This document shows positions 1,587-48,354 of a DNA stretch of 64,000 nt, in pieces. The notes below the pieces were generated by a model. The model searched no databases. It saw only the letters and a program-made list of their open reading frames with translations, and had not been told where the DNA came from. Each line of letters opens with the position of its first letter. Positions within the stretch are counted from its first letter, which is position 1. Location of the stretch: contig JANHCV010000008.1 of NCBI GenBank assembly GCA_025594325.1, forward strand, positions 124,001 to 188,000. Direction: 5' to 3'. Both the position numbers and the translations under genes were made by a program. This stretch comes from Blastocladiella emersonii ATCC 22665. Its lineage: Eukaryota > Fungi > Blastocladiomycota.

Positions 1587-3038
1587 ATGCACATGGACAC
1601 ATCCGGAACTGATGTCTTGGGGTCGGCCGACGCACTGATCACGGCCGCACTTCGGGACAACCGGCTGCCTGAACGCCGCCGCGACCTCGCCGAGCTCCGT
1701 GCCGCTGCTCTTATCATCGTCATGCGACTGCGGATAGATACGATCCGCGGAACCCTTGCTTCTCGATGTCGGACTGCTTCTCGGCCCGAAGCAAAAAACG
1801 AGGGGGAACGCGCCCGTTTCAGAGTCGAGTCGCTGCTCCGAGTCGAGGAGCTTGGCACCTCACTTGACATACGATTGGCTGCAACCACGAGTCGAGCACT
1901 CGAACCTAGCGACGTTCCCGACTCAAAATCACAGTTATGTCGTTTGCGCTCGTCTTCACCGCGGCGCCCAACGAGCGCGCGCAGTTCGCACCCGCTACGG
2001 CCGGGCAACAGCTCCGCGTCAGACTTTGCTGCGCTTACTACTCTTGTCGACCACAAAGCTCCCTTCTTCCGCGAGTGGAACCCCTCCATGATTGAGCGAA
2101 CCCCGCGTGCGTTCGCGAAGCGCCTGCAAGGTATTGCTCAGCGTGCACCGCTCGCGAAACTGTTACTCGCGGCGCGAAGCCGAGTCGCGCCCGACCTTTA
2201 CACCATTTATGGAGTCCTGCTACGCACCTTCATTTCCAACGACGAAGCCGAGACCACTTTCATTCGTGTGGCAACCTGCGGCTGGAATGCGAGGTGGTTT
2301 CTAAAACGGCTGCTACTCGCTCCACGGTCTCGCACCAAGATCCGCTCGTTTTTCGCGATTTTCCGCGACGTGCTCGCCGAGGTGACGCAGGTGACGCCCG
2401 AGCTCGGGCGGGAGCGCTTCGTTAAGCTTATCTTCGCCGAGAAACTCAAACGAGCTTTTGTGCGGACTTCGCCGACAGTTTGGCGAATCGTGGATGACGA
2501 CAAGGCCTCGCTTGGTGACATCGTTAATGAATACTACCGGCTGTTGCGTATGGAGCGCGCCGGCAATGTAGATCCTAAGCAGCCTCGTGACAAGCCACCG
2601 CTTGCTCCGGCTCGACTAATGGATTATGCGGTTCCCCACCAGCCACGTGCGCGTTCCCAATCACCAACCTCGTCGCGCGGACTCTCATCGAAATCAAGAT
2701 CACGGTCGCGGCCCCGCACTCGCTCACGGTCCCGTGCCCATAACCGTTCAATATCCTGTACCCGCTTGCGATCCCGCTCTCGCTCCATTTCGCGGCATCG
2801 CGCGCATCATCCATCTTTTCCAATTTCCATCGCGCCTTTGGACTCTGAGCTTTGCCGCGACCCAAACTCGCGCTCGTCAGACCGTCGCGCACTCCCGCTT
2901 CGCGGTCAATCGTGCACGCTGTGCGTGAATCCCGCGCTTGGCTGGTCGAAACTGTCCCTTCCTTCTACACTAGGTTTTGTACGCTCCTTGCCGAGACTGT
3001 GCGCGTGGACGCAGAAGTTCAGCTGGATTGCTCTCTGA
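1587..3038 (+). CDS. Gag-capsid-like family member 1 (RS-rich tail)
   Basis: Family N-terminal helix (IVMRLRIDTIRGTL), core ending FVKLIFAEKL, SRSRSR tract, CTLC at end. Confidence 0.55.
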   Translation: MHMDTSGTDVLGSADALITAALRDNRLPERRRDLAELRAAALIIVMRLRIDTIRGTLASRCRTASRPEAKNEGERARFRVESLLRVEELGTSLDIRLAATTSRALEPSDVPDSKSQLCRLRSSSPRRPTSARSSHPLRPGNSSASDFAALTTLVDHKAPFFREWNPSMIERTPRAFAKRLQGIAQRAPLAKLLLAARSRVAPDLYTIYGVLLRTFISNDEAETTFIRVATCGWNARWFLKRLLLAPRSRTKIRSFFAIFRDVLAEVTQVTPELGRERFVKLIFAEKLKRAFVRTSPTVWRIVDDDKASLGDIVNEYYRLLRMERAGNVDPKQPRDKPPLAPARLMDYAVPHQPRARSQSPTSSRGLSSKSRSRSRPRTRSRSRAHNRSISCTRLRSRSRSISRHRAHHPSFPISIAPLDSELCRDPNSRSSDRRALPLRGQSCTLCVNPALGWSKLSLPSTLGFVRSLPRLCAWTQKFSWIAL

Positions 3039-3604
3039 AACACATTTTCGTGGCCAAGATTTTCTTTGGCCTGGGCTACAATCCCGATGTGATTTTCGAC
3101 GGGCTTCTTCAAGACGGAACCAAGTCGATCGCAGACAGGACGTCCGCGCTTGGCGATCTCATTTTTCCGTCGGTTCTGCTGAATCTGCGCGCCCCGGTTT
3201 ACAATATCCCGTCACTTCCAGGAACGGGCTCCGCTGTCCCCGTGGCTTCCGGTGGGCTATGTACCTCCTGTACGGAGCTCGGCGAGCACCCCGACCTTGC
3301 CAACTCGCACGCCACCAACGAAAGTCTCTCGCTCAAGAACCCACGGTCGTTTGCCCAGGTCTTTGTCACGAGCGCACATGCGGCAAAAATCGCCCTGCCC
3401 TGGCTTACCCGGGCAAACATCAGCGATGACGAGCTGATGCAGGCCGTCCGTAACTTTTGTACTGCACTCCCGAACGCAAAGGTCTCGGGCACTTCGTTGA
3501 TGTTGCAAACAGAGTCCTTATTGTGTGCACAACGCGGTTTCCGCGCGCTTCTGGCGCTTCCAGCAACCATTAGGACGCGCATACTCCGTGAAATTTGGCC
3601 ATAA
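2852..3604 (+). pseudogene. C-terminal half of a Gag-like family member in a second frame
   Basis: KHIFVAKIFFGLGYNP..LGDLIFP..CTSC..H matches KKLFVDKVFLSLGYNP..LGDIVFP..CMYC..H of 9118-10305. Confidence 0.55.
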
Positions 3605-4243
3605 CTTCGCAAGGCTCGGCCAGAGGCTAAGGTGGGGCGAACATCGCGTAGAAAATAATATACTCGTTCGTAATATACCTCGGCGAAGCAGCGATACAAC
3701 GAACGGCACACGACTGTGGTCGATGATGATAATGACAATCGCGATGCGAGCGAAGGAGGCGCACATGCGTGCTCATTAATGAGACGTTTTTGGTTCGTGA
3801 GTTCCTTGACAAGCACTGCTGCACCGACTACCTCGAAAGTATACCCGATTGGCTCGTTGTTCCCAAGATACACCCGTAAGACGAATCATCCCCCGCGACG
3901 CGCTTTCGGGGCTCTCGCTGATGACGTTTAAAATGTGGGAGTAGCAAAACTTGGTCCTGAGCGGCTCTTGACACATCACGCTTCCCCCACGCGTACCCCA
4001 GCTGCATCGTAGCGAGCTCCGTCACGAACAAGTCGTGCTTCTGGTGTAAGGCGAATCAAACGTGCGTCGATTGAAGTGATGGCTGCGCAGTCGCATTGCA
4101 CCGGCAAATGCGACACGTCTCGAAAATCGCCGCGAGACATCATGTGACGCCTCGGATGTGGCGGAGTCACTCGACCGGCTCGCCACGCTAGCACTCTGTC
4201 TCCCCTCGCTTGCGAGTCCACCAACTATGCGATGAATTCAGCC

Positions 4244-4420
4244 ATGGAGACTTCCTGCAATGCGTTTATGGAACCCGGAGCGACCCGTCCCGCGCCCAAC
4301 GACCTGCGCCGCGCGACTGCCTCGTTCGCCTACTTTGGTGCCACGGGGACGCTCCCGACTACCGAAGCCGATGGGACTTCCGTTGCTGAACAAGGCGGCC
4401 TACTCAATTCTCAGCTGTAG
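4244..4420 (+). pseudogene. N-terminal stub of a Gag-like family member
   Basis: METSCNAF...RRATASFAYFGATGTLP matches MTSCNEL...RAAAALDDYFAGSRELP of 30082-31818; truncated where the 82-bp duplication starts. Confidence 0.45.
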
Positions 4421-4562
4421 CTTTAGCGAAGCTGAGTTTCTGTGGGAGCAATTGAAACCTATCAGGCACATCAACCTTGCCCTACTCAATTCTCAGCTGT
4501 GGCTTTAGCGAAGCTGAGTTTCTGTGGGAGCAATTGAAACCTATCAGGCACATCAACCTTGC
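4399..4562. repeat. 82-bp tandem duplication (2 copies, 1 mismatch)
   Basis: 4399-4480 and 4481-4562 identical except gtAgc/gtGgc. Confidence 0.95.
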
Positions 4563-8848: not shown

Positions 8849-10305
8849 ATGACCATGAAGACTCCATGCAACTTGAATAAAAAGCCGCTACCAACACACG
8901 GCAACTGCCGTGACGCACCAGACTTGCCCATCGAACCTCCGTCCGAACGGAGCGCTGACAGCTGCGAGGACCAGCAACAAGCAATCTTGCGCATTATGGA
9001 GCTACGCATCGAGGATATACGGACCGCTCTCGCTCTCAGGCTTGATACCTCCCTTGCCCTTGGCAATCAGATGCCGCCGCCGCCAAACTTGCCGACCAGG
9101 AGGCGCAGCTTGAAAGTTTGACTAAGCCAACACATTGCTTGGGTTCTGATGCTGTCTATGCACATCCCACGCGGACAGAACATATGCCCGAAGCAGTTCA
9201 CGCTGGTCCAGCGCATGCTCGCCGCGAAGTCGACGCGAGCCGCTCCCAGCACCCGACACTCGCCACGTTGCCTGCAACTCGGTCGGTCGAAGCTCCCGAG
9301 CCCTTTTTAGCCAAAAATTCCAATCCCTTGTATTATGACGACAATCTTCGCGTAAAGCTCAAGCAATATGGCCCTCAGCTCCGGACCATGTACGACAGCC
9401 CCAACGACGCGCTTTGCGCTGGTCAAGCGTTTCTCGATGATCTTACTCGCCTTGCGCCAAAAGTACCGCTTGCCGTGCTGCTGGTGCACTCGTATCCAAA
9501 CGTAAAACGCGCCTTGTATCGCATGTACGCGGTCTCATTGCGTATGACTGCATCCGATGACGAGGCCAGGCGGGTCGTCCTCGACGCACTCAAGCCGCAC
9601 AACAATCCATCGTCGTGGATTAATCGCTGGAACCGACTTAAGCCTCGGCCGAGTACAACGATGGCTGCTTTCTATGAAGATTTCATCTCTTTGCTTGGTG
9701 AAAAGGTCGCGATCGACGCTGATCTTCAGCGATCGTGGCACATCAAGAAGCTGTTTGTTGACAAAGTATTCCTGTCACTCGGGTACAACCCGAGGTCCTC
9801 GCTGAGAATGGTTGCCGCGCCCGATGTGACTTTGTTGCAGCTAGTCGTCGCGCTTGGTGACATTGTATTCCCCACGCTTCTCTCGACCGATCCCGTCCCA
9901 GTGCAAGGAACCGACTTGGCGAACCATGGCGGCTCGGGTCCCTGCATGTATTGCCGGGTACTTTGTCGAGCCGTTGACGTAGTCCGCTCACACACGACGC
10001 GTGAATGTCGGGCACTGCGTGACACGCGCTCCGTCGCAACGGCGATCGTGAGCGCAGCGCAAAGCATGAACGTTTCGAGTCTGCCTCGCGGCGTAATCAG
10101 CTTAAACGAGCACGGCTCGCTCGACGCGGCGAGGCAGTGGCTTCTTGACTTGACCCGCGCGCGCATTCCAAAGGGCACGTCCCAGCAACAAGCCATCAAG
10201 ATCAAGTCGGGGCGGTTCGTCGCTTCGGCGGTCATCAAGCTTCCAAATGCGGACTTCGAGCGGGTCCTTCCGCGAATCTGGACCGAGATATTGGCGATCT
10301 GGTAG
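8849..10305 (+). CDS. Gag-capsid-like family member (N-terminal ORF 8849-9121 frameshifted to 9118-10305)
   Basis: KTPCNL and ILRIMELRIEDIRTAL N-terminal motifs; core RWNRLKPRPSTTMAAFYEDFISLL..HIKKLFVDKV; knuckle CMYC-x12-H-x4-C. Confidence 0.65.
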
Positions 10306-10782: not shown

Positions 10783-12513
10783 ATGGCCGTCGTGAAGCCG
10801 GTTTCTTCCGAAGTAGGAGCTGCTTCCAACGTTGCTCCCGAAGTCGCGATCGAATTGTCGCCTGTCTCTGCATCGCTCGCGCCGGCCGCTAATCTCGGCC
10901 CTGTGTCTCACCCTGTATCAAGCCCGAACGACCTCACACAGCCCGCTACCGTCGAACCGGAGGCTGCTCCCGAACCTTCGCTCCAATTTGTGCCTGTAAT
11001 CGAGTCTGTCGCGTCGGCTACCGATCTGGACCATGCAGCTCGCATTGCACCATCCCCGGCGGCACTCGAACATTCTCCAAAACGCCGATTCTGGTCGCCA
11101 CCGCGTTCGATTCCGCTTTCCCCACCCCCAGAGCTTTCTATTTGTGATTTCAAACCAGACCCTTTCGCTTGTGATCTCGAGCCACTTGCATCTGCGCCAA
11201 ATTCGCCACGCCCAAGTCTCAAGATTGTCGATTTTGAAGAAGAGGAAACTGCGCCACTTACGTTGGATCATGCCGCTCAGTCATTGCTTCCGCTCTTGGC
11301 AGCGCAGCCAGCCTCAGACACGTTCTCTAATCCACTTACACTGGATCACACCGCTCAGTCATCGCTTCCCCCTGCTACAGCGGAGCCCGTCTCGAACGTG
11401 CCCTCTCATCCCGCACTTGCGTCCGACCAGGGAAATGTTGAGCCAGAGGCCTTGCTCGCTGCTTACGAGACCCTCGCGTCGCACGTGGAGGCGATCGTTG
11501 GCGGCGTCGAGTTCGACGACTTTGATTACACCGAAGGCGCTCCTGCCGCCGAATCAAGGGTCGACATTCTCGCGAGCGGGGTTGAGCCAGGTAAGCTCAC
11601 CCAAGCGCTCATCGATTCGCACGACCGCGTCCCGGCCACCAACTACCGTGCGTTCGCGATCACGCTGTCGCCCGATATGCCCGACGACGCTGCGCGTGCC
11701 GCGGTTCTTTCTGTTTTCGCTCATCCGCGCAGCGGCTGGGTCACGCTCTGGATCAAGTTTCACGTCGTCAAGCCCGCGTCGAATACCAACGACAAATTGC
11801 GTGGGATACTTGTCCACGCCGCCAAAGTTTTGACCGACTCGGACTCGGGTTTCGCGGACAGGTCCGGCCTCCCGCACGTCAAGGGGCTCTTCACTGACCG
11901 GCTCGCTTGGGTCGATCGTGCTTCGCTCGCCTGGCAGATTGATGATCCGAAATGCAAGGTTGCGGATATTCTGACCATCGCCACTCAGCATTACGGGTCG
12001 TCGAACAAATCGCACAAGGGGGGCAAGCACAAGTCGAGCCGCAAGTCGAAGTTCCCTGTTGCTCCTGCGCAACAATCGCCATGCACGAACCCCACTTTTT
12101 CGGCCGCCCCTCGCCCTTCCGACCCTCTGACGCTTCGTCGCCAGGCCGTCGGGTGCTCCTACTGTTCCACGGCTCCGGATAGCCATCCCATCGTTCCTCA
12201 CAGCGAGACCGAGTGTCCTCGACTCTTTGACGCGCCCGAAATCGGCGCCCAAGTGACCAAGGCCATCGCCGGCATGACGTATCCGGTCGCGGTCATGCTT
12301 CCGCAGTACGGCCAGGAAGAGATTGCGCTCGACGCTCTTGCGAGGCGGATGAGCGACGACTTTGCGTATCGACCGGTGCGCCCTGATCGCCGCCGCGCGC
12401 TCGTCGCGCTCAACGCGCTCTTCCGGATCCCGGACCTCAAAACGCGGCGCGACCGGATCCAGCGGATCCTCGCGTGGGCGCAGTACATGCAGTCGGGTCG
12501 CCCGGCGACCTAA
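10783..12513 (+). CDS. Gag-capsid-like family member, 576 aa, intact
   Basis: Core GVEPGKLTQAL..W..W..PHVKGLFTDRL; knuckle CSYC-x11-H-x4-C; Pro-rich N-terminal half. Confidence 0.7.
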   Translation: MAVVKPVSSEVGAASNVAPEVAIELSPVSASLAPAANLGPVSHPVSSPNDLTQPATVEPEAAPEPSLQFVPVIESVASATDLDHAARIAPSPAALEHSPKRRFWSPPRSIPLSPPPELSICDFKPDPFACDLEPLASAPNSPRPSLKIVDFEEEETAPLTLDHAAQSLLPLLAAQPASDTFSNPLTLDHTAQSSLPPATAEPVSNVPSHPALASDQGNVEPEALLAAYETLASHVEAIVGGVEFDDFDYTEGAPAAESRVDILASGVEPGKLTQALIDSHDRVPATNYRAFAITLSPDMPDDAARAAVLSVFAHPRSGWVTLWIKFHVVKPASNTNDKLRGILVHAAKVLTDSDSGFADRSGLPHVKGLFTDRLAWVDRASLAWQIDDPKCKVADILTIATQHYGSSNKSHKGGKHKSSRKSKFPVAPAQQSPCTNPTFSAAPRPSDPLTLRRQAVGCSYCSTAPDSHPIVPHSETECPRLFDAPEIGAQVTKAIAGMTYPVAVMLPQYGQEEIALDALARRMSDDFAYRPVRPDRRRALVALNALFRIPDLKTRRDRIQRILAWAQYMQSGRPAT

Positions 12514-12646: not shown

Positions 12647-14431
12647 TTGAACAAGTTGTCGACAGCAGGACAGACGCGTGCTCTGAAGCGGCGCACTGCC
12701 GGCCGCGAGCAAGGGAACTGTCGCGAGACAGCCACGCGTCTATCACGTGACGTTTCCGAGACACGCCGAGCCGCGCGTCTCGCCTCTCGCGCTGTCGAGA
12801 TCCGATCAAAAACCTCCACCTATGCAGACGCCCTTGAGGCATGGAACTCGATGCATACACTTCTTGCACTATCTGAGCCGCCCGACACGGGGCGCGTTCC
12901 CACGCGCACAGAGACTGTCGCTCCGCCGTCGGCTGCGGAGAGCCGCAGCGCGCGGGAACGGACCGCGCTCGTCGACACCGTGAATCACCGGCTCAACCTG
13001 GTCCACTCGATTCTCAACCAGCGACTTTGCGCCTCGGGATTGGACCACCATGCACGCGGCATGGAGTCGACGCGCGCGCTCTGGGACGCGGAACGGGCAC
13101 TTGAACACGTCCGCGCGGGCGCACCTCCATCCGATCCTACGCTGCCTGATTGGTTCCTCTTCCCCAATAGAGACCGTCACGATCAGTCAATGCTGCGCGG
13201 CGCGCGCGACGGCGCACTTGAGCAACCAGCCGTTGACGCTAGGCTCGCAGCAGTCGTCGAGGCGGCCGACTTTCAGCTCAAATCGGTCCAGCCGCTTGAC
13301 GTCGACGCGCGCGTGCAGGTCGAGCACATGCTCACTGCCCTTGTAAACGGTGGCGTTCCGCCCGGCCGGCTCGCTGACGCCGCGCTCCTGACGCGGCCAC
13401 GCCTCGCAAACGACATGTACCGCGTCATTTCGATTACATTGCGCCCAGGCATGCCTGATGCGGATGTGCGCGAAGCAGTCCTCGCCGTGTTCCACTCGCC
13501 ACAACCAACGTGGCTCCTCCCGTGGCTCACTTTCCGTGTCACCCCTCACATGAGCGGGGCTACCGTGCTTGGTATGGCGCGGTTGATCCTGCGCGACGCG
13601 AACGGGTGGATTGAGGACTGCGAGCGGCTCACGCATATCAAGAAACTGTTCGCGGAGCGGTTCGACGGCTTGGATCTCAGTCAAGTTTGGAAATACGTGG
13701 CCGACTCGAGACGGACGGTCGAGGACGTAATCACGGCGTGCTTCCTCATCGCCGAGCGGAATACCGAGACCGCGTCGCGTCACGTAGCCGGGCCCGTCGC
13801 AGATCTCGGATCGAGACCCGAAGCAGAGCAGCAACGCCGAATCTCGACGTCGTTGCCAGCCGCAGCTACGTCGCCGCCGCCGCCCGCCCCGCATGTGGAC
13901 GAACGGAAATCGCTTCGTGACGCGTCGGGTCACATCTTGCACCAGCGCAAGTCGCCTATCCCAGGTCTCACATGCGTCTACTGCATCGCTTACTTGACCG
14001 TGTCACCGCCTTGCGGCTCGCGTAATCGCTTTGTCGCACACGACGAGAACAGCTGCAAGCGGATTGTCAACCCACAAAACGTCGCCATTCTCGTCTACCT
14101 GGCGATGCGCTCGTTGCCCGTGAGCCAGCAGATCCGGATCGCCACTCCGTCCATTGACCAACATTCGGTGATCATCAATAAGCGGTTTACGGATATCGAG
14201 CTCTCCCTCGCGGACGCGCGCGCATGCGCATCGCGCGTGGGGGCGCTCGGACACGCTGCGGTGGCCGCAATTAATCGGCTCAAGCAGAAATCGCGCACCA
14301 ATATCGCAATGGGGGTGATGGTCATTCTCGCGGGCATGCAGCAGGCGCCCGCGCATGTGACGAACGAGGAGGCGACCAGATTGGGCGTGGAGCGGTTCAA
14401 GGAGTTCAAGGCGAAGAGCCGGCGACTCTGA
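12647..14431 (+). CDS. Gag-capsid-like family member, up to 594 aa, intact
   Basis: Core GVPPGRLADAAL..WLLPW..THIKKLFAERF; knuckle CVYC-x18-H-x4-C; true start uncertain. Confidence 0.7.
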   Translation: MNKLSTAGQTRALKRRTAGREQGNCRETATRLSRDVSETRRAARLASRAVEIRSKTSTYADALEAWNSMHTLLALSEPPDTGRVPTRTETVAPPSAAESRSARERTALVDTVNHRLNLVHSILNQRLCASGLDHHARGMESTRALWDAERALEHVRAGAPPSDPTLPDWFLFPNRDRHDQSMLRGARDGALEQPAVDARLAAVVEAADFQLKSVQPLDVDARVQVEHMLTALVNGGVPPGRLADAALLTRPRLANDMYRVISITLRPGMPDADVREAVLAVFHSPQPTWLLPWLTFRVTPHMSGATVLGMARLILRDANGWIEDCERLTHIKKLFAERFDGLDLSQVWKYVADSRRTVEDVITACFLIAERNTETASRHVAGPVADLGSRPEAEQQRRISTSLPAAATSPPPPAPHVDERKSLRDASGHILHQRKSPIPGLTCVYCIAYLTVSPPCGSRNRFVAHDENSCKRIVNPQNVAILVYLAMRSLPVSQQIRIATPSIDQHSVIINKRFTDIELSLADARACASRVGALGHAAVAAINRLKQKSRTNIAMGVMVILAGMQQAPAHVTNEEATRLGVERFKEFKAKSRRL

Positions 14432-14452
14432 GTATGGCATTTGTATACACGC

Positions 14453-15398: not shown

Positions 15399-17149
15399 AT
15401 GCCGACTGGATTACTGCCAAGCGAGGGTTTGGAGCAAATCGGCATCGCGGAACCAAAAATCGCCGTCGAGGAGGCCGCCTTCTACCCCGTTTTGGAACAT
15501 CGCGTACCGCTCGAGCGGTTCCCGGCGACGATGCAACTCGATTCCGGTGCTTCTCATCATGCGATCGCGGGGCTTGACATGCTCGCGACCCGGGTCGGCA
15601 CGGATCACGCAACCGTCCCGGCTTCTTCTGCCCATGATGCAGCCGAGCTCCAAAGTCCAGTCAATCAATCAATCAAGCGCAGGCTCTCCATGTTCCGCTC
15701 AACCTACTTTCTCGCGCATCTCCGTCGAAAACAACGTGTTGGCTGCAACGGTCTCGCACGCTTCTGGGACGGCAACTCGCCCGTCAACCTCGGACCAATC
15801 CGACACGCCGCCACTGGACCGCGTTCACTCCACCACTCGGCCTGCTTCTCAGGCGTCCCTGCCCGAGCCCGATCTGGGAGGAATTATAAGCCGTGTCCAG
15901 TTCACCTTCCGTGTCGGTGACCTTGAGAAAATTGATGCGGTTGCCTCATCAATGGGCGAATATCGCCATGCTCTTCGCGCCGCCGGTTTTCCACCCGGTT
16001 CCCTTGCCGCCGTAATAATCAAATCGCAGGGCAAGGTCCCGCCCACCATTTACCGAGCCTATGCTATCGCACTCACTCCCGGAATGGCCGACTCCAAGGC
16101 CCGCTTAATTGTAAGCACTGTTTTCCGTGTACATCGCCCCGAGTGGTGCAAGAAATGGACCTCGTACCGCATCCGGCCAGAAAGATCCCGTGAGTGGCCG
16201 CTCACCGTGGAAGGACTTATCGATTCCGTTGCGCATGTTGTGCGCGGACCTCTTGGGAAACGCCCCGACCGAATTTATCATACGCACATCAAATCGCTCA
16301 TCGTCGATCGGCTGTGGTGCATTGAGGGTGCGGCGCTTCGCGAGTACATTGACAACGACAGCTGCTCGCTTGAACGCGTGCTCCGGTTGGCGCACAGGCT
16401 TTACCTGTCGACGGTATTCCGCGGTTCCGGCGAAGACGCTGCGTCCATCGATACTGCTGATTTGAGCGACGCCGCCTTGCTTGCTCAGAACATGGGGTGC
16501 GCCCACTGCCGCTTTCTCGTCTCGGAATCTCCATCGCTCGCGCTCGGCAACTCTAAGCATCGAGCCGCACACGGAGCCGAATTGTACGCGACTACTCCAA
16601 GTCCGAGATCTCGCAAATCAGGTGTGTTCCGCCCTTGATGGCCACTCGCTGCTTCATTCTATCAAGGAGCCATTGGAGGCCGACAAGGAAGCGAAGCTCG
16701 TCAAACATCTTGGACGAGTAATCCAGTTGCTGGGCTCGGTTCGGACTCGAGAAATTGCTGCAGGGGGCTCCGGGCTTGAGGCCTTGCAGGCGCGCGTTGC
16801 GCTTCGGGCTATGCTCCAGATCTCCTCCTGCTACGACCGCCGGCTCATCCTTTACAAGCTACTCGAAGCGATCTACTGCGAGAAGCAGCGTTTGACTCCC
16901 AAGGAGGACCGCCGCGCTCTGCTGGCGCGTCCCATGAATCGGTCGCAGCGTCGGGTCCTCCTAAGAGACGGCGTAATCGAATGTATTTGGCCCTCGGGGA
17001 AGACTTTGCAGAGCAAGCATCCTGGCCTACCTTTCAGATCCGCTTCCGGTTCAATACAAATCAAGATCCCGATGGTTTTCTTGGAGGACGCGTTGCACCA
17101 CAAACGTGACCGCGGGCCAATCAGTGGCTCGAGGTGGCGCAGCCAGTGA
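15399..17149 (+). pseudogene. Frameshifted Gag-capsid-like family member
   Basis: Core GFPPGSLAAVII..THIKSLIVDRL in 15547-16638; CAHC there and PHTEPNC in the overlapping frame 16481-17149, implying a frameshift near 16555. Confidence 0.6.
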
Positions 17150-27764: not shown

Positions 27765-27936
27765 GGTGCGTGCGTCGGTGATTTCATTGCGAAACAGGAA
27801 GCGTGAGCGGAGAGACGGCACCGCGCGCCAGCGACGTCGCTTTGTGTACAGGAAGCGATCATGATCACGTTTTGCCTCACGTGTTTGATCGACGCGTCTC
27901 GCCCTTTTCCTGGTGCGACCAACACTTTGTATGCAA

Positions 27937-29842: not shown

Positions 29843-30081
29843 GATGCATGGAGGGGGTCGAGCGGGTCGAGAGCGGCAGCTAGAGTGCAAACCAATCGCT
29901 TCACAAAGCTTACTGATTGTTTGACGCGTCTCGCGCCCTGTCCCGCGTGCTGCCTCAGTCCCTCCGCAGTGGGCGCGCGGCTCGACCTCCACGTTTTCAT
30001 TTGCGCCAAATTTTGACAACAACTGTGAACATCAAGACTGGGCGCGCGGCCATACTAACAAAAACGTGTGCATTACAACTC

Positions 30082-31818
30082 TTACCGCCGTTCGCCAATT
30101 CGGAATCGTTTCCGCATCGCATCGATCTCCTGCCATATCGGCACCAGATGCGACTCGGTCATTGCATGGGGCACCTCGCAAAGGGCAGTGAGGAACAGGT
30201 TTGCGTACCGGAGCGCCTCCAGGTCGCGATCCGCAGTAAACTTAGCCCGCGCTTGGCGCGCGCGCTCGGCGTACTCGTGGCACAGCGCGACCAGCGTTTC
30301 GTATGATCTGCTGCGCATGGTTTCCAACGACGGAAACGCGTGACCGAGCAGCATGAGCCCAAAGAAAATGGATCCCGCAACACGACGCGTATCAGCCACG
30401 TGCGGACACCTGGTGAGCGGATGTACCTGCGCCTTGCGCATGAGGGGCTCGAAGTGAAGGCAGTACGCACAAGGCTTTGCGATTGCGCGCACCGATTTTG
30501 CGTCACAGGCCGCTACCGCTTCCATCAAGGCAGGGTTTGAAGTCTGAGCTGGAATGATAGAACGCAAAACCTCCAGTGATCGCGAGGAAGTCTTGATTGG
30601 CGGCGACCGTGAGCGGTTACGATTCGGAGCATGCGTGGCGGAAGTGGAATGCGAGCGTGTAGACGAGGGCGAGCGAGAGCGAGCCCGAAGTAGTGGGTCC
30701 TTGCGAAACGACTTCGGCGGTGGCAGCGATTGGGAACGCTCGACGGTGTTCTTACTGATGTGCTTGGAAATCAATGTGAGAGGCGACACGGGCAAGCCTC
30801 GCGGCTTGGCCGGATCTGCAACTTTACCGCGTGGGTCAGCGGAGGTCGAAGCGCAGGTCGGCTGTGAGGCAGTGGGAGTCGGCGCGCGAGTATTGGCTGG
30901 TCCGGGGAGGACCACCGAGCCCAAGTGCTCAGTAAGATCGCGAATCGAGTAATCCTCGCTCTTGACAAGAGCGGCGAGTTTCGGGTCGCCCGTTTCCGAC
31001 AAGCCCGCCTCCGTAAGAAACAGCTGCTTGACGTGCGGGGCATTGACGAGCGCCCAAATCTTCTTCGAGGAACGGAAGATGGACCACACCTCCCGCTGGA
31101 AGTCATCAAGTGAAGATCCAGGCACCGGCGCAGCGTCAATCCAGCGCTGGACCCATCTTGGGCGCCGAGCAGGGTCCAACCCGAGAAGAAAATCAGCCGC
31201 CGCGTGTGTATCCGATTGGGTTTGGGTGACAAGGACCGCATACGCGAAAAAGTCTTCGGATGCCACGTTCTCCCTTGAGAGAATAAGCGCGCGGGCGAGG
31301 TAGTGTTGCGGGACAAGTGTTCGGAGACAGTTGAGAAAGTCACGCGGGTCATTGGTCGTCCACCGTCCCGGTATCTCGGGAAGTCTAAGCCGTGGGCCAC
31401 GGGTGCGCAGCAGCTCCCTGAGCGGAATGTGTTTATCTTCGGGGCGCGGCCTTGGTGGTGAGGACGGGGGCCGATTAGAAGTGCCCGGAGCCGAGTTTCG
31501 AGCAGGTTCGAACTTTGATTCCAACGATGGAGTGCCGGGGTCAGTTTTAAGAGACAAGCAGAGCCGTTCGAGTTCATCAATCGTCGCCAAACCTGCCCGG
31601 CCTGGCAGGCCCGATTCGTAACTCGCGGCAGCAGCCAACGCTGTACGGATTACGCGCAGTCGAATCTTCATCACGCGCCACGTGGCGCCCTGCAGGAAAA
31701 GTGATCGAGCTTGCCGCGAAGCGGGGAGCTCCCGCGACCCAGCAAAGTAGTCGTCCAGGGCAGCAGCGGCGCGGGAGATATCATAGCAAGAGCTTTTGAG
31801 TTCATTGCATGAAGTCAT
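30082..31818 (-). CDS. Gag-capsid-like family member, about 578 aa, intact
   Basis: MTSCNEL start; core NDPRDFLNCLRTLVPQHYLARAL..WVQRW..PGSSLDDF..PHVKQLF; RSRSP tract; knuckle CAYC-x12-H-x4-C. Confidence 0.75.
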   Translation of the reverse strand: MTSCNELKSSCYDISRAAAALDDYFAGSRELPASRQARSLFLQGATWRVMKIRLRVIRTALAAAASYESGLPGRAGLATIDELERLCLSLKTDPGTPSLESKFEPARNSAPGTSNRPPSSPPRPRPEDKHIPLRELLRTRGPRLRLPEIPGRWTTNDPRDFLNCLRTLVPQHYLARALILSRENVASEDFFAYAVLVTQTQSDTHAAADFLLGLDPARRPRWVQRWIDAAPVPGSSLDDFQREVWSIFRSSKKIWALVNAPHVKQLFLTEAGLSETGDPKLAALVKSEDYSIRDLTEHLGSVVLPGPANTRAPTPTASQPTCASTSADPRGKVADPAKPRGLPVSPLTLISKHISKNTVERSQSLPPPKSFRKDPLLRARSRSPSSTRSHSTSATHAPNRNRSRSPPIKTSSRSLEVLRSIIPAQTSNPALMEAVAACDAKSVRAIAKPCAYCLHFEPLMRKAQVHPLTRCPHVADTRRVAGSIFFGLMLLGHAFPSLETMRSRSYETLVALCHEYAERARQARAKFTADRDLEALRYANLFLTALCEVPHAMTESHLVPIWQEIDAMRKRFRIGERR

Positions 31819-39698: not shown

Positions 39699-39826
39699 CT
39701 CCGCCGACGCCGGTTCTCGCTCGCCCGCGGCTCCGCCGACGCCGGTTCTCGCTCGCCCGCGGCTCCGCCGACGCCGGTTCTCGCTCGCCCGCGGCTCCGC
39801 CAACGCTGGTTCGCGCTCGCCCGCGG
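39699..39826. repeat. 32-bp tandem repeat, 4 copies
   Basis: CTCCGCCGACGCCGGTTCTCGCTCGCCCGCGG starting at 39699, 39731, 39763, 39795. Confidence 0.9.
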
Positions 39827-41417
39827 CTCTGTGGCGGCGGTCGCATCGGCTGCGCTCGCCGCGACCTATGGCCCGCACTCCGCCTACTCGTTTTTGCGGG
39901 TCGACGGGCATCATCGACAGCGCTGAGCCGCCCGACAAGCGTGCCGCCGCGCGCGACCGTGCCTTGGCGGCTCGCTGCGCCTTGGCGCTCGTCAAGATCT
40001 CTCGCGCGCGCGTCTTGGGCCCGCCGCGCAGAAGACGGTGGCGGTGAAGCCGTCGCCGCCGGATCGTTCCGACACGCGCCACCTCGCTCAAGACCCGGCG
40101 CGGGTCAAGTCGCCGCCGTCCTCGCGCGCCGGACCTCGCGCTGCCGACGCCACGGACCGTGCCACCGCAGCGGCCGTGTGGCCGGCCGGGCCGACTCGCG
40201 GCCATCGCATCAGCTCAGCAGCCACCGCTACGCACGGTGGCCGCCGCCGCCGCGGTGGTCGCTGCTGCCGCGTCCCCACGCTGTCCACCAGTCCCTGGTG
40301 GGCGGGTATGGCGTCGCCCACGGCGGGCATCGCGACCACGTTGCGCAGCGACTACTCTCGCTCGCCCTCGCCCCGCGGATCGACCCATAGCAATCAATAC
40401 ATGCATTTGATACTTGACACCGCGTCCCACCGTCCCGCCGCCACGGCTCGCGGCCATGGCAGCTGCAGCTCGCGGCCAAGTCCCCCGTCTGGGCCGGATC
40501 TGGGCCTGGCAACCAGATCTGGCCCGGATCTGAGCCAGACGGCTCATCTGGGCCGGATCCCGCCCCAACACCCGAGCCCCTCCGCGCGCGCCCACCCCGC
40601 CGCCCGCGTCTGAGCCGGATCCGGCCCAGAAGCGCAGTCTGGCTCAGATCCGGGCCAGAGCGGTGCTGCAGGTTTTGCGATGCTGGAACAGAAGGGCGTC
40701 GTCAAGCGTGTGTTCACCACATTTGGTTCTATTCATAAGTTTTACGGGGAGAGTGGACAGAATCTGAGCGCAAATTGTACGCATATCCGAGAGCAAATCG
40801 AGGCGCAATAGTGCGCGGAATCTCGCCGCAATTTGGCTGCAAGCGCACTAGGAAGCGGACAAAGTGGCACGGGCGAGGGCCCGCTTGCACGACTCTTGGC
40901 ATCCTATGTAGTCTCGTTGCCAGACCGTATTGTCGCGGGGAGCGGCGGGATTCCTGCAGTGGGCCGAGGCGGCCCTACCCAGCGCCTGCTGACCTGCGAC
41001 GTACGTCTACCCACAGTCGGCCAGCCAAGGTCATTTCTCCGAATGCCCGAGGCCACCCACGCCAACCATGTGGCTGTAGAGTCTGGCACCAAGACTACAT
41101 CCTATGGGCTCAGGGTAAAGACAGAAATCAAGCTTGAACCTGCGGTGTATTCGTGAGTACGCGAGATATACGGATCGTGGCACATTTTCCCTGGACAGGA
41201 TTGTTGATGCCAACAGAAGGAGGTGGGAGACAAGTAGTCAGGGATGTCTATTCCTGCCTTCGGCCCCGAACCCAAGACGGGGAGAGGGGAGAATGGATAA
41301 CAAAGCAGGGCGCGCCGCAGCGGGGTGCGGCGGCGCGGGAGCGAGGGATTGCAGGCGGCTCACGTGAGATCAGATGATTGATCACCGCGGTCGTGGCCAC
41401 ATGAACGACACGCAACA

Positions 41418-44400
41418 TCACCTCCCCCCAGACCGTGACCTGAGCGACTTGACGAACCCTTGGTACACCGCGTTCTTGAGCTGGCGACCGGACCAGCTGC
41501 GCGTGATGGATGACAGCGGGTCGGGCAAGGGTGAGCGCGCGCGCTTTGGGTTGGCGCGGGCGGGCAATGAGGCGGCCGAGGACTGCGTGACCGAGAACTG
41601 CGACTTGTCGGCCGAGACTTGGCGAGGAGCAGGATCTTGGCGTGGAGCGGGCACAGGGGAAGACGCGGCGACCTTGGAGGCGAGACGCTGCAGCGAACGC
41701 TGGCGCTTGAGCCGAGTGTCGGCCAAGATCTTCTTGTGGTAGTCGTTGATGGCGCCAGCGGTGTTGAAGCTGCTGGCGGGGATCCACAAGTTCTCGGTGG
41801 AGCGATTGGACCAGCGGACCAGGTACTCGCGCTCGCTGTTTGCGCCGTCGAGATGACAGGGGATGTCGCGCACGGTGTCCGATTCGCCCAAAGGCGCCGA
41901 CTCAGGCTGGATGAGGCGCAGGTGGTGCGCGGGGATCTTCTCGGCGAGTGCGCCAGTGGCGTCGCGGAGCACGTACGCGCCGCCACGGTTACGGCGGACC
42001 ACTGTGTACGGGCCCTTGTAGCGTGGGTCGAGGCGGGAGGCGCGGTCGGTGGTCATGCGCATGACGATGGCGCCCGCGGGGAAGTCAGTGGCAATGATCT
42101 TGCAGTGCTGATCCGTGCGCGCCTGCACAACGGCGTTGCAGTTGGCGGTGCGCTGTGCAATGGCGGGGTAGATGGACTCGGTCATGAGCTTGAGGCGAGC
42201 GAGCTGCTCCTGCTCGGTCATGTCGCGGAGGGGCGGCTGCGCGCTGTAGTCCCAGAGCGCGTTGGCGGGACGTGCAAACATGAGCAAGAAGGGCGTCGAG
42301 CCGTGGCGCGCGTGCGCGCGCATGTTGTAGGCGCACTGGATGGCCGGGACCATGGCGGGCCAGCGGTCGAGCTGCCCGTTGAGCGAGGGGAGCAGCATCT
42401 CCTTGACCGAGCGAACAAGACGCTCCGAGGCGCCGTTGGCCTGCAGGTGGTACGGCGACACAAGGCGGCGGTCGATGCTGGCCATGTCGGCAAGCGAGGC
42501 AATGATCTGGTTGGCGAACTCGGGGCCGTTGTCGGACTGGATGATGCGCGGGAAACCGAACTGGAAGCACGTGGCCAGGAAGCAGGTGGCGACCTCGCCG
42601 GCAGACGTGGAGCGGATCGGGTGGAGCCACGCGAACCGGGTGCAGATGTCAATGATCACGAGCACGTGCGTGTAACCGTTGGGCGAGATGGGCAGCTGCA
42701 TGCAGTCCATGGACAGGTGGTCAAGCGGCAGCAGCGCCTCGATCGAGCGCATCGGGTGGAAACCCTGCCGCGTGGCCAAGAACCGCGCGCACGGGATGCA
42801 ACTGGCAATGACGCGCTGGCAGTCGGCAAGCATGCCAGACCATTCGTGGCCGAGGACGACGAGCTGCTGCTGTGTGGCCGCGGGACCCGAGTGGCCCCAG
42901 TTGTGCATGCTGCAGATGATCTGGTTGCGCTGGTCATGTGGAACGGGCGCCGTGTTGAGGCGCTGCGCAGGCGGGACGGTGCCAATGGGCGAGAACTTGG
43001 GCCGCAGCGCGCTACCCTCGGGGGCGGGTGCGGCGGTGATGACGCGGGCGTGCACGGCGGGCGCGGGTGTTGAAGAAAAGCTGCCCCCATGGGTGGGTGC
43101 GGCAGCAAAAGCGCGGGCCCGCTCCGCGGGCGGGAGCGAGGCCAGCGCAAGGAAGAAGTGTCGAGCACGATTCTCTGCGAGGGAGAGATCGTGCGTCATG
43201 AGCTGCTTGAGCTCGCTGTCGCCGAGGGCACACTCGGGGAGAGACGGCGCAGGAGAGGATCCGGAGGGACCCCCCCCCCACCAGCGGGCGCCCACGGGGG
43301 GAACGCGATATAGGACGCTGGCCGGCGCGGTCAATGGCGACAAGACGGGCACGGGCGTCGGTATTATACAGGCGCGACAGGATGTTGGGCAGCACGTTCA
43401 GGACGCCGGGGAGGTGCGTGACTGAGAACGAGAGGGAGAGCAGCGTGTCGAGCCAGTTTTTGAGGACGGGTGACAGGCGCTTCCACGTGAACATGTGGGT
43501 AGAGCGAGAAACGGCGGCCGTGGAGGAAGTAGAAGAAGAGAGTGAGCGCGAAGACGATGCCGAGGAGCTCGCGCTTGGTGGCTGAGTAGTTCTGCTCGGC
43601 GGGCTGCAGAGAGCGAGAGGCAAACGAGATGTAGCGCGGGGACTTGCGGCTACCCTGGGACAGGACGGCGCCGAGACCGACGTTTGAGGCGTCGGTAGCG
43701 ACGAAGAACGGCTTGGAGAAATCAGGCGGCGCGAGACACGGGGCGGCGGCGACGGCGGCCTTTATGGCAAGGAACGCCTGCTCGCACTCGTCGGTCCACA
43801 CGTTGCAGTTGTCGAGGTCAATGCGCTTGAGGTTGCGCAGCGCGTTGAGCGGGTGCATGAGGGCCGCGGCGAGCGGGATGTAGGCGCGCAGGTAGTTGAC
43901 GAGGCCGAGGAACTTCTGGACCTGGTTGCCGGACGTCAGACGCGGCCAGTTGCGGATTGAGACGACCTTGGCCTCGGCGGGCTGCACGCCCTCAGCCGAG
44001 ACGACGTGGCCAAGCAGGTGCACGCGTGCGTAGTAGAAGAAGCACTTGGCGGGGTCGAGGCGGATGGTTGTCGTCGGCGATGACCTTGTTGATGTGCCGC
44101 GGGTCAATGCAGACGCGGTGGCCAACGACCTTGCCATCGTGGTCCTTCTTGGGGAGCACGATCAGCGGGCAGTTCCAGAGACTGCGGCCGCGCGCGCGGC
44201 AGATGACGCCCATGGCGAGCCACTTGGCGATCTGCTCGGTGATGATGATCTTGTCGGCAAGCGAGCGGTGGTACTGGCCCACGTACTTGCAGAGGGTGGT
44301 CTCGGACAGCTGCACGCGGATGACCGAGTCTGGGTGCAAACACACAGCCTTGCGCGAGATGGCGCCGTTGAGCTCAAGGGCCGCGCGGAGGACCAGCGGG

Positions 44401-44990
44401 ATACTGTCGAGGATCGGGCGCTCGCCCGCGGCAATGAGCCAGTCACGCTCGTCAGGCACGTAGGGCGACGGATTGTTGCGGCTCTTGGGCTGATCAAGCT
44501 GCACGCCGATGACGCCGATGCCAATGCGTGGCAGGATGTCAAGACCGAGGAGGCACAGGATGTCGGCGTCGACAACAAAGAACTCGTGCTGCACCTCATG
44601 ACGGTTCACGCGGACCCAGCAGCGGATGGTGCTGACTGTGCGACACGAGCTGACGCCGTCCACGTCTATGCGCTCAGCGACAAGGTGCCAAGCGAGTTCA
44701 CCAATCATTTTCAGCGAGATGAGCGACTGCTGCGCGCCCGTGTCCACGATGGCGCCTGGGACGCGAACCGCGGGACCGCCGTCGAGGAACAGGTCTGCAC
44801 GCACGGTCAGGAACGCCGGGTAGCACCAAGAAGGCTCGCCGCGAACAGGCGTGCAGTTCGCTGCAGCCGAACGAGCGCGCGAAGATGACATCGGGCTGGA
44901 TAGAGCCAGAATGATGAGGTCAGAGATATTATTATTGTGAGCGACAAGCGCCACGTACAGGTCGCAGATGGACGCGCGTGCCCAGGTCAC
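41418..44990 (-). pseudogene. pol: pol of element A: protease, RT with core deletion, RNase H, integrase, chromodomain
   Basis: VDTGA protease; RT N-terminus (CIDPRHIN) fused out of frame to RLDPAKCFF near 44065 with no YxDD; TDASNVG RNase H; HHCC, SMDC, SDNGPEF, GASER, GPY, EYLVRW. Confidence 0.85.
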
Positions 44991-45335
44991 GGAAATGCGG
45001 GTGTGCCCAGCCAGTTGGGGTTGACCGCACCCGCGCCGTCATGCTCACGGCGCGCACCAGAGCGGGCGGGGGTGGCGAAATGCGCGACGGGACCAAGGCG
45101 GCTGCAAAGGGGATCGTCGTGGGTGACGGTGGCAGCGCGGGCCAAGGTGGGGCCAAGGCGGGAACCGACAATGATGTGGTAGAACTTGTCGAGCAGGTGC
45201 GCAAACAGGCTGGTGGCGGACGCTGGCAGGAGGGCGAGGACACAGAGGTGGTGGGCGAGCAGGGGCTGGGAGCGGGGAATGCCGTTGACCGCGCGGGCAA
45301 GCGAGGAGACAAACTCAGAGCAGGAGCGCTCAAGG

Positions 45336-47036
45336 TCATCCGCCAAACTTGGTCTCAAGACCCGCGGGCCAGACGGGCGCCACGGCCGCGTGGTAGTTGC
45401 GCGGGGCGCGCTCGCGCACAGCGGAGCGGGAGCGCGAGCGGGACCGGGGACGCGAGCGCTGACGCTTGTCGCGGCCGCCACGATCACGATCGTGGCGGTT
45501 GTTGGGCATGGCGAGAAGCGCGCGCGGGGTGTCGCGAGACGCGCGGTCGTCATGGCCGGCCTTGCCCTTGTCGTAGTGGCCGTTCTTGTCGTGGGCGCCG
45601 CCGCCGCGGTGGTTGTTGTAGTTGTTGTTGTTCTTGTTGTTGTAGTTGTTGTAGTTGTTGTTGTTGTTGTTGTAGTTGTTGTTGTTGTTGTTGTAGTTGT
45701 TGTTGTTCTTGTTCTTGTCCTTGTCCTTGTCGCCTGACTTGGTGCGCGCAGCTGGCACGGCTGACGAGGCGTCACCAGCGTTGCCGGCGGGCGCCTTGCT
45801 GCGCGAGGCAATCTGGATGTAGCCGTGGGGGCTAATGAGGTTGACGAGCGTGGGCAGGGTGCACTTGGAGGTGGCGGTGCCGAGCGTGTGGCAGAGGGCG
45901 TTGTAGACGTCGTCCTTGATGCCCTTGACCAAGTTGAGGAACAAGGAGAGGAGCGCGGGAGGCAGGCGGCTGATGGGATCCAGGCAACCCACCTCGCAGA
46001 GACGCCAGACAAACACGACGCGGTGGCGCTCGAGGGTGAGGCCTGGAGTGGCGGGGAACGAGAGGTCAAGGTAGCGGACGATGGCGGCGCGCTCCATGTG
46101 GTCAAAGAAGTGGGCGATCAGCTGGTGCTCCTCGAGACCGGCGCCCTCACGGACCATCAACTTGTACACAACCTGGGCGTCGTGGCCGACGGTGGTGGTG
46201 GCGGCGTCGAGCAGCTTGTACAGGTTGTGCAGCGGGTAGAGGTCGCGGAGGTTGCGGAGGAAGGTGGCTGGGTCTTGGCAGTTGCCGCGGGTTGGGTGGC
46301 AGTAGTTGATGCGGGTGCTCTCGATGTCAGCGCGCAGCTGCTTGTCGACGCTGGTGGTCAACGCAGCAGGAGCGGCTGGCGAGGCGGCGGCTGGCGCGGC
46401 CAGGGGCGCCTCGGCGGGCAGCATGTCAACGGCGAGGTCGATAATGTTGTTGTGGCGCGAGTGCGCAGCGATGAGCGCGTCCAGCGCCTTGGCGGCCTGG
46501 GCCTGCAGCTTGGGCGGGTGGGTGGCCAACGTGCCGTTGCCCTGGGACGGCGCGGGTTGCGCGGCGGCGTCTTTTTTTTTTTTTAAACCTATGGGTATAC
46601 ACCATTCCTTAACAGTGGTTGTTTCCTGCAAGCAGAGTATCCACTGTGCGACGGGCATCAGCCCTTCTGCGGGCGGGCCACATTTTTTGTGACAGACCCA
46701 GACCATGAACGTCAAGGAGCATAGGATGGTTCAATGTAACTCACTGGGCTTAAGTGGGTTGTTACTTTGCGAGGGGACTGCTTGCTTCATAGAGAACCAC
46801 ACGCCTGGCCCGGACCCTCAGCAAACACCGTCTGGATGGGAAAGTTGCGCGGCGGCGTCGATGGCGGCCGAGCAGGCAGCGAACTGCTCACCAAGTAGCT
46901 GGCGCAGCTCGGCGGCGCGCGCGCGTGCGGCGGGCACGGCCTGGGGGTCCTTGGCCGCGGTGCTGCAGGTGCCGGGGAGCGCAGAGATGTCGCTGCAGAG
47001 CGCCAGCGAGATGGTGAAGGTGGGGTTCAAGGCCAT
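45336..47036 (-). pseudogene. gag: gag of element A, interrupted by a poly(A) insert; poly-Asn and RS tracts
   Basis: Removing 46572-46843 plus one TSD joins MALNPTF..DAAAQ to PAPSQG.. in frame; (AAC)n tract about 45610-45720. Confidence 0.75.
46572..46843 (-). mobile_element. 272-bp poly(A)-tailed retro-insertion (SINE or 5'-truncated LINE) with 16-bp TSD
   Basis: T13 at 46572-46584; GTTGCGCGGCGGCGTC at 46556-46571 and 46844-46859. Confidence 0.9.
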
Positions 47037-47274
47037 GCGGAAAACTACTTGAAGAAAATGTTGATGCCGACAGAAGGAGGCGGGAGACAAGTAGTCAGGG
47101 ATGTCTATTCCTGCCTTCGGCCCCGAACCCAAGACGGGGAGAGGGGAGAATGGATAACAAAGCAGGGCGCGCCGCAGCGGGGTGCGGCGGCGCGGGAGCG
47201 AGGGATTGCGGGCGGCTCACGCGAGATCAGATGATTGATCACCGCGGTCGTGGCCACATGAACGACACGCAACA

Positions 47275-47825
47275 AGGATAAGCGCGCGAGCCAGTTTACC
47301 AGCAGGGACCACGTTTCGGAGGTGGTCAAGAAATTCGCGCGGGTCACTGGCCGACCACCTCTCAGATGTTGGAGTTGTCCGAAGCAGCGGGCCACGGGTC
47401 CGCACAGCAAGTTCAAGCGGACTAGGCTTGTCGGCCAAGCGCGGTTTCGGCGGCGAAGTACTGGACGGGATTGGGGTAGCCAGTGTCGGTCCGGAGGGGG
47501 GGAGCGCACACGGTGACACAGCTGAAGAGCGGCCTAAGTCGGCTTCCAGGACGTTGCAAAGTTGTTCGAGCTCAAGGATCGCGCGATGCGTTGGGTCCCG
47601 CAAGCAGGGACTCGACGCATCCGTGGTCCCAAGTTGCGAAGTCAACGCGGTTCGAATCATGTTCACGCGCGCATCCATAACTTTGCAAAGAGCCCCCTGA
47701 AGGAGAAGGACGTGATTTTGTCGCGCTGCAGGAAGTTCATTGGTTGCATTAAACTGAGAGCTGACAGCGGCCGTGGCATAAGCTAGATTGGCGCGGGGCC
47801 TTTGGAGTTCATTGCATAGAGTCAT
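47275..47825 (-). pseudogene. Gag-like family member split by retrotransposon A
   Basis: MTLCNEL..SDPREFLDHLRNVVPAGKLARALIL continues after the element as SRENVPRSVYLAY (41201 downward), matching ARALILSRENVASEDFFAY of 30082-31818. Confidence 0.75.
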
Positions 47826-48087
47826 GATAAATGCATGTGAGTTTCCATTGCTCGGCGGGGCTGTCGAGGGGAGTTCGGCTTGGCGACGCCGCTCGCGCAA
47901 CGAAAAGGGCGCGAGCGGGTGTGGCGTGTGGCATTCATCACATGCTTTTGCAATGCGTCTACCAGCTCGACCTCCGCGCCTTCCGTCAGCTCTGTGCGCA
48001 ATCATCGCTGATCCAAAAACGAGTTTACCTTGTGTGTTTCGTAACTGTTGTGCGATGAAAAACATGATGTTACAACGAAACCTAATG

Positions 48088-48354
48088 TCAGCGGCCAATT
48101 CGGCGTTCCCACATCTTCATGATGTTCGCCCACACCGGCACCAGGTGCGACTCAAGCATTGCCTTGGGGACCTCGCACAGGGCGGTGAGGTACAAGTTTG
48201 CGTAGCGCAGCGCCTCCAGGTCGCGATCCGCAGTAAACTTGGCCCGCGCTTGGCGCGCGCGCTTGGCGTACTCGTGGCACAGGGCGACCAGCGTTTTGTA
48301 TGATCTGCTGCGCATGGCTTCCAACAACAGAAACGCGTGACCGAGCAGCATGAG
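48088..48354 (-). pseudogene. C-terminal fragment of a Gag-like family member, cut by the viral terminus
   Basis: Close nucleotide match to about 30107-30357, ending abruptly at 48354. Confidence 0.75.

Follow-up and report, generated by a model that had tools for sequence, protein, structure and literature searches.

Members of the family and their domain architecture

The DNA studied here, referred to as the window throughout, comprises 64,000 nucleotides (bases 124001-188000) of the 1,801,506-bp contig JANHCV010000008.1 of the water mould Blastocladiella emersonii ATCC 22665 (assembly GCA_025594325.1) and harbours a family of tandemly arranged genes whose predicted products combine a helical core with an expanded zinc-knuckle motif. 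The genome of this strain amounts to 34.27 Mb in 21 contigs, and its published gene annotation was produced by ab initio predictors via funannotate (PMC9730499). The G+C content of the window (~0.55-0.68) is uniform and host-like. An initial inspection of the DNA, in the following called the original prediction, had interpreted about a dozen of these genes as descendants of the capsid (CA) part of a retrotransposon Gag protein. Searching the window with its own long open reading frames (ORFs) by tblastn, which detects paralogs at 20-46% identity, and scanning its six-frame translation with hidden Markov models (HMMs) of the core and of the C-terminal domain, we find copies at essentially all of the predicted loci. 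The six-frame scan identifies 12 family copies; with an N-terminal remnant at 4244, the window carries 12-13 diverged paralogs (Table 1). The loci at 15399 and 26290 do hold members, although the ORFs originally named there are off-frame, and the site at 4244 retains a remnant of the N-terminal motif but nothing more of a member.

Alignments of the members reveal all of the features which had been proposed to be shared, namely the N-terminal helix, the H(I/V)K of the core, the C-C-H-C knuckle and the C-terminal helical domain. Along the protein, the N-terminal helix is followed by a low-complexity linker, a nine-helix core of ~165 amino acids, an Arg/Ser-rich linker, the knuckle and a C-terminal helical bundle. 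The helix carries the motif MxxCNxL and then R(L/I)xx(I/L)RxxL, which in the window is opened by the ATGs at 1587, 8849, 27764, 31818 and 47825. Only one core residue, the Lys of H(I/V)K, is invariant, and two Trp residues are nearly so. The knuckle conforms to C-X2-C-X(10-25)-H-X4-C, its four ligands being invariant or nearly so in 24 aligned sequences; judged by this pattern, the putative knuckle with its expanded middle loop is a new variation on the classic nucleic-acid-binding motif. AlphaFold models are confident, with a predicted local distance difference test (pLDDT) score of 88.7 for a 317-amino-acid member and of 96 for the core alone, which is modelled with nine helices. Profile searches of the PDB with the C-terminal domain and with the core returned chance or designed-helix matches only.

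In line with the mixture of intact and decaying copies noted originally, four copies of the window are intact (8849/9118-10305, 10783-12513, 12647-14431 and 30082-31818), two contain a single frameshift and the remainder is truncated. Member 1 possesses neither an in-frame knuckle nor a C-terminal domain and is therefore truncated or decayed, and the knuckle of member 2 is degenerate, its last Cys being replaced by Ser. Since the N-terminal helix of member 3 (ATG 8849) is out of frame with the core ORF, either an intron or a frameshift has to be assumed. Member 5 shows the widest knuckle spacing among the window members (CX2CX18HX4C). A frameshift within the knuckle of member 6 splits its core from its C-terminal domain, while the C-terminal part of member 7 has decayed to a single weak match at 26391-26618. 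Member 9 continues in frame into member 8. Member 11 is interrupted by the insertion of an LTR (long terminal repeat) retrotransposon, element A, flanked by a target-site duplication (TSD). That member 11 might represent a split but intact gene was considered and rejected, as reading across the empty site of element A reveals a frameshifted continuation which decays after few residues; due to this decay past the junction member 11 is a pseudogene. Element A is a recent insertion into this member and no partner of the array.

Table 1. Family members and LTR retrotransposons of the window (positions are those of the window)
Feature	Position	Strand	Content
Member 1	1587..3038	+	ATG 1587, N-terminal helix, core 2037-2528, then Arg/Ser-rich tail
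Member 2, 5'-truncated	2852..3604	+	Partial core 2951-3178; C-terminal domain 3191-3601
N-terminal exon remnant (METSCNAF...)	4244..4410	+	Interrupted by stop codons; followed by a duplicated 82-bp repeat
Member 3	8849..10305	+	Core 9346-9906; intact knuckle and C-terminal domain, 9880-10302
Member 4, intact 576-amino-acid ORF from ATG	10783..12513	+	Core 11488-12033; knuckle and C-terminal domain 12088-12501
Member 5, intact long ORF	12647..14431	+	Core 13250-13783; C-terminal domain 13904-14353
Member 6	15547..17149	+	Core 15949-16437; C-terminal domain 16487-16912 (16435-16912 in the HMM scan)
Member 7	26391..28040	-	ATG 27764 (MTTCNDL); core 26826-27365
Member 8	27937..28897	-	Core 28396-28897 with one frameshift near 28670; knuckle and C-terminal domain (27940-28374) intact
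Member 9	28913..30022	-	N-terminal region and full core 28919-29473; without knuckle and C-terminal domain
Member 10, most complete copy, 578 amino acids from ATG (MTSCNEL)	30082..31818	-	Core 30871-31422, then long Ser/Pro/Arg linker, then knuckle and C-terminal domain 30100-30516
Member 11	47275..47825	-	N-terminal region and first ~45 core residues (47274-47414); continuation 41154-41207
Member 12, C-terminal domain fragment only	48100..48450	-	82% protein and 87% DNA identity to member 10
LTR retrotransposon A (Ty3/gypsy-type), not a family member	41202..47274	-	PR-RT-RNaseH-IN and Gag (H9P43_006641, 45336-46715); LTRs 41202-41417 and 47059-47274, 216 bp, 98% identical; 5-bp TSD AGGAT
Element B (Ty3/gypsy-type)	57932-63222		LTRs ~57931-58106 and 63048-63223, 176 bp, 98% identical; TSD CGCGG

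We would also like to mention an inverted repeat of 171 nt whose arms (31979-32149 and 33603-33773) are 99% complementary and lie 1453 nt apart, one of them overlapping member 10 where its long ORF has its 5' end. A foldback or terminal-inverted-repeat element may be behind this repeat, or else an inverted duplication of the promoter region.

Extent, growth and selection of the family

To follow the family along the contig, six loci around annotated members were fetched at contig positions 196 kb, 564 kb, 861 kb, 958 kb, 1.16 Mb and 1.29 Mb which, together with the window, make up seven stretches, 198 kb in total, between 124 kb and 1.30 Mb of the contig. All DNA-level scans refer to these 198 kb of JANHCV010000008.1, while the wider reach of the family was assessed via annotated proteins. 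The sampled DNA contains 54 core matches, 36 of which are near-full copies, and a single 25-kb locus accommodates about a dozen copies. Beyond the window, which constitutes its left edge, the family stretches over more than 1 Mb of the contig, so that the original count of about a dozen applies to the window but underestimates the family; in the megabase region as a whole the copies number dozens or, probably, hundreds.

Searched with a family profile, 1.84 billion representative proteins gave 27 hits, about 20 of which are true relatives. Of the 27 hits, 20 were looked up: 14 are hypothetical B. emersonii proteins encoded on JANHCV010000008.1 and six are unrelated, repeat-driven matches; proteins of fish and aphids and TPR proteins that came up in this search were rejected as multi-stretch low-complexity matches. 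Ten further family hits which we looked up likewise derive from this contig of B. emersonii, and the locus tags of the annotated relatives range from H9P43_006651 to 006885. Neither the 1.84 billion representative proteins nor metagenome contigs yielded a relative from outside B. emersonii, and scans of viral and metagenome collections with single proteins gave no match. No match was obtained either in a word-indexed protein search with a full member of 640 amino acids, in which the low-complexity linkers probably swamped the word candidates and for which the copies of the window lack annotation. As far as such sequence comparison reaches, the family is found only in Blastocladiella emersonii in the databases searched.

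Most copies in the sampled loci lack a gene model. Two annotated models (P0004 and P0005) appear to merge several neighbouring copies by splicing; adjacent copies apparently merged in this manner are seen in H9P43_006859 (locus L004:10001-13458, comprising three cores) and in H9P43_006885 (L006:10001-15141). As the family is almost wholly missing from the published annotation, a sizeable fraction of the coding capacity of one chromosome is invisible there.

The copies are mostly arranged head-to-tail about 1.5-2.5 kb apart and their orientation is mostly uniform within a locus. For 20 of the 36 near-full copies the nearest relative resides in the same locus, compared to 5.7 expected (permutation p<1e-4), and at one locus the duplication of a block of several genes is seen. 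The copies are strongly diverged, the median pairwise identity of their cores being 25%. Nei-Gojobori estimates for the eleven closest pairs give a synonymous divergence (dS) of 0.33-1.6, values above 1 being saturated, and a ratio of non-synonymous to synonymous divergence (dN/dS) of 0.21-0.38; no sampled pair has a dS below 0.33. These ratios, a check which the original prediction had called for, indicate purifying selection and lead us to reject neutral evolution. In 22 of the 36 near-full copies a single ORF of 419-840 codons spans core and C-terminal domain without interruption. Spacers between the genes (n=27), most of them 0.3-0.9 kb long, show almost no DNA similarity among each other. 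With coding similarity and ORFs kept while the spacers are unrelated, it is the coding sequence that is conserved and not the non-coding DNA.

As had been claimed, the members are not accompanied by the hallmarks of mobile elements. No LTR-like direct repeats flank them even at low stringency, while elements A and B, serving as positive controls, were detected with their LTRs and TSDs. The only pol genes of the window are those of elements A and B, and none lies near the arrays in the six further loci. Dispersed recent copies were not seen, the annotated relatives which we looked up all being encoded on one contig and the closest sampled pair showing a dS of 0.33. Hence, the family is non-mobile, old, locally duplicated and under selection; it evolves by birth and death, as proposed originally, and shows no recent transposition. 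Two further possibilities were considered in passing: a centromeric or satellite nature of the array was rejected because its ORFs are intact and under purifying selection, and Helitron-mediated capture, for which there are weak PIF1 hits in L004 and L008, is not favoured, since the copies keep to a single region.

Probable Gag ancestry and competing explanations

Outside the family, similarity to the core is detectable in one protein only, the Gag of element A (amino acids 143-266, ~20-25% identity). In an hhalign comparison with 147 window ORFs it ranks first among those not belonging to the family, aligning over 100-113 columns with P=6e-4 and a probability of 28% when the core profile contains 30 sequences; with 8 sequences P was 0.009, i.e. 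the signal improves with profile depth. HMMER finds the same protein with P=2.8e-5 (residues 145-191) in the same register, the one noted in the original prediction. Both results are suggestive yet stay below usual homology thresholds. Composition-preserving shuffles (n=150) reach 11.9 +/- 2.0 (maximum 18.2) compared to 29.5-31.5 for the real element A Gag, a distance of ~9 standard deviations. Both proteins continue after their helical region with a basic stretch rich in Arg and Ser. Element A Gag differs from the family in that it lacks a zinc knuckle and the family-type C-terminal domain, is followed by pol and is flanked by LTRs and a TSD. The family layout of helical core, Arg/Ser-rich basic linker and C-C-H-C knuckle is collinear with the order of CA and nucleocapsid (NC) in Gag, and the position after the core and the types of the four ligands are what the knuckle has in common with the NC type. 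Finally, one of 25 members scanned matches the Pfam family PNMA, albeit below threshold (E=0.011; 15.7 bits versus a cut-off of 25). The original prediction had built on a likeness to element A Gag; this likeness is statistically detectable, yet it argues only weakly for descent from Gag.

Other observations weigh against this descent or against gag co-option. A significant match to the CA fold, which structure prediction had been expected to reveal, is not obtained: despite the confident models, Foldseek yields no significant capsid match, the best E-values being 0.75 in the PDB for the full model and 0.39 in BFVD. At rank 1 of the PDB matches of the core stands the capsid of bovine leukaemia virus (BLV; 4ph0_C), a non-significant match with E=0.95 and a TM value of 0.25, while there is no capsid at all among the 50 best matches listed for the full model in the PDB or in BFVD. 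Sequence-profile searches of the PDB produced nothing relevant. In the 25 members scanned, no Pfam Gag model exceeds its threshold and zf-CCHC matches none, the knuckle deviating from the canonical CX2CX4HX4C by a middle part of 10-25 residues instead of four. The core bears no similarity to the Gag of element B. Orthologs in synteny across species, as known from co-opted gag genes, were not found among annotated representative proteins. In the stretch of the published annotation that was read (window 41829-63049) the window members are uncalled, and for the exact products of two intact window members located outside that stretch there is no called gene on record. We would like to note that protein searches with the Gags of elements A and B returned only their own B. 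emersonii copies. As the Gags of this fungus are themselves orphans, weak sequence signals are to be expected either way. Membership in the Gag superfamily is not established; the ancestor was probably a retrotransposon capsid gene, and we lean moderately towards descent of the family from Gag.

The most serious competitor of this reading, which we regard as possible but doubtful, is a lineage-specific orphan family of zinc-knuckle proteins independent of retroelements, whose likeness to element A Gag would reflect chance or the convergence of helical, compositionally similar proteins. It accounts readily for the lack of a significant Foldseek capsid match at pLDDT values of 88.7-96, for the missing Pfam or PDB sequence matches past threshold and for the non-canonical knuckle spacing; moreover, at least one other unrelated orphan tandem family on the contig suggests that the region breeds orphan families generally. 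It sits less comfortably with several weak signals in favour of Gag, namely the HMMER and hhalign matches to element A Gag in the same register, a PNMA match and a retroviral capsid at Foldseek rank 1 for the core, and with the succession of core, basic linker and CCHC-type knuckle corresponding to the order CA-NC.

Much less probable appears to us that a giant mobile element, or an integrated virus of very large size, extends over much of the contig and includes the family, comparable to the paralog expansions of giant viruses. The confinement of the family to one contig, the virus-type genes at window 50.7-64 kb and into L003 (A32-type ATPase, primase-helicase) and the many neighbouring orphan genes without a Pfam domain would fit such an element. 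These virus-like genes, however, make up a compact element of ~20 kb apart from the arrays, ordinary host genes, chitin synthases for instance, occur in between, the G+C content remains uniform and host-like at ~0.55-0.68, and the BFVD structures contain no match to the family. Hardly credible, and already disfavoured, is the view that a gag-only, non-autonomous LTR element multiplied as a tandem LTR-gag-LTR array via unequal recombination and, its LTRs having since decayed, left the copies behind as relics: while the head-to-tail period of 1.5-2.5 kb is what unequal crossing-over between LTRs would generate and the region does contain active LTR elements as well as a solo Gag relic of the element B type at 17279-17857, direct repeats resembling LTRs are lacking even at low stringency, spacers are unrelated even between copies with a coding dS of only 0.3-0.8, the known copies all reside on one contig with none of them near-identical, and ORFs have been kept at a dN/dS of 0.2-0.4 long after mobility could have ended.

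Returning to the preferred explanation, we envisage the window as the left edge of a megabase-scale, Blastocladiella-specific and non-mobile tandem family which descends from Gag and is maintained by conflict; for this explanation taken as a whole we see the chances evenly balanced. An LTR retrotransposon akin to the resident element A would have supplied the ancestral gag gene. The copies of the family have multiplied by local and block duplication. The proteins may self-associate via their helical core, and the knuckle may bind nucleic acid or zinc. What would keep the family is genetic conflict, most plausibly interference with the assembly of retroelement or virus particles. A housekeeping role seems less likely. 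The conflict reading fits the extreme divergence, the turnover by birth and death and the presence, in the same region, of young LTR insertions (98% identical pairs) and of a virus-like insertion. A bolder version, which we consider improbable, would see in the family a megabase-sized, fast-diversifying set of over 100 zinc-knuckle proteins of capsid origin which serves as an innate library, its members acting as decoys or binders directed against the capsids of retroelements and viruses, an immune-like system with no described counterpart; its context would be the fresh insertions of LTR elements and of a polinton-like virus in the same region.

Among capsid-derived proteins, mouse Fv1, yeast Ty1 p22 and sheep enJS56A1 interfere with particle assembly or uncoating. 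They are single genes or products closely related to their targets, and rapid diversification is expected under conflict. The B. emersonii family likewise shares its region with active LTR elements; the likeness to these factors is one of analogy, and the roles put forward in the original prediction, a dominant-negative restriction factor or an RNA-carrying capsid of the Arc/PEG10 type, are hypothetical. It differs from them in that its core is only remotely similar to element A Gag and in a copy number higher by orders of magnitude. Of the kinds known, the co-opted gag gene comes nearest, as exemplified by Arc, PNMA, RTL and the fungal Crtg12-14, with the reservation on superfamily membership made above. 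As in such genes, a gag-like coding sequence without LTRs or pol is immobile and under purifying selection, its ORFs having been maintained after the loss of mobility, and PNMA is the only Pfam family with even a weak match to the B. emersonii family. Co-opted gag genes described from fungi up to now occur as single copies and are conserved across families (PMC8321522). Unlike these, the present family is confined, in the databases searched, to one species; it has been amplified across a region of more than 1 Mb and possesses an expanded knuckle as well as an extra C-terminal helical domain. A tandem array of four domesticated totivirus-like capsid genes of RNA-virus origin, STORM, is reported from yeasts (bioRxiv 10.64898/2026.05.24.726934). 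With STORM, the B. emersonii family would have in common a tandem array of capsid-derived genes (an ancestry only inferred here) persisting in a fungal genome and fast protein evolution, whereas it is far larger and has no viral capsid match in BFVD.

Should Gag ancestry prove true, the family would exceed by far every expansion of capsid-derived genes known from fungi and would be the first such case in an early-diverging, zoospore-forming lineage. Dozens of natural variants on one scaffold would permit a direct test of the repeated recruitment of capsid-derived proteins for genome defence.

Resident elements and other neighbours

Element B, whose Gag carries a canonical CCHC knuckle, sits inside an integrated virus-like element, polinton-like or virophage-like in kind, between a fibre gene and an integrase-like ORF. 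The solo Gag fragment at 17279-17857 (+) is ~43% identical to the Gag of element B, has no pol or LTR nearby and separates the plus-strand from the minus-strand sub-array of the family.

The virus-like element occupies window 50758-57922 and 63158-64000 and extends into L003:2038-6917. Its genes include one for a packaging ATPase of the A32 type (53090-53887, recorded with Pfam Pox_A32) and, adjoining it, an ORF of 406 amino acids (51829-53049) which may be a capsid gene and for which neither the PDB nor IMG/VR yields a match. Further constituents are a fibre-like protein with 84-nt repeats and a Phage_Tail_Tip hit (55886-57922), the integrase-like ORF without a Pfam hit (63158-63928) and, just past the window, a primase-helicase of 996 amino acids (Herpes_ori_bp).

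Short intergenic tandem repeats adjoin family members or element A at 4399-4562, 48479-48650, 49157-49476 and 39684-39843, their units measuring 82, 86, 38/65 and 32 bp, respectively. Between members lie two ORFs of ~600 amino acids without a Pfam match (6728-8524 on the minus and 37684-39507 on the plus strand). The second, unrelated orphan tandem family is located at L005:358-15136 (contig ~851-866 kb) and is absent from the window. It consists of proteins of 140-180 amino acids, most of which start with MG(F/Y)xxxK, and its copies, at least 8 in number, are interleaved with those of the Gag-like family.

Two chitin synthase genes are found ~50 kb apart at window 23035-25224 (-) and L003:11157-17526. 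The window gene shows the QRRRW motif; for the L003 gene the annotation lists Chitin_synth domains together with a weak HMG box. Their position amid the arrays indicates that ordinary host genes are interspersed with the family.

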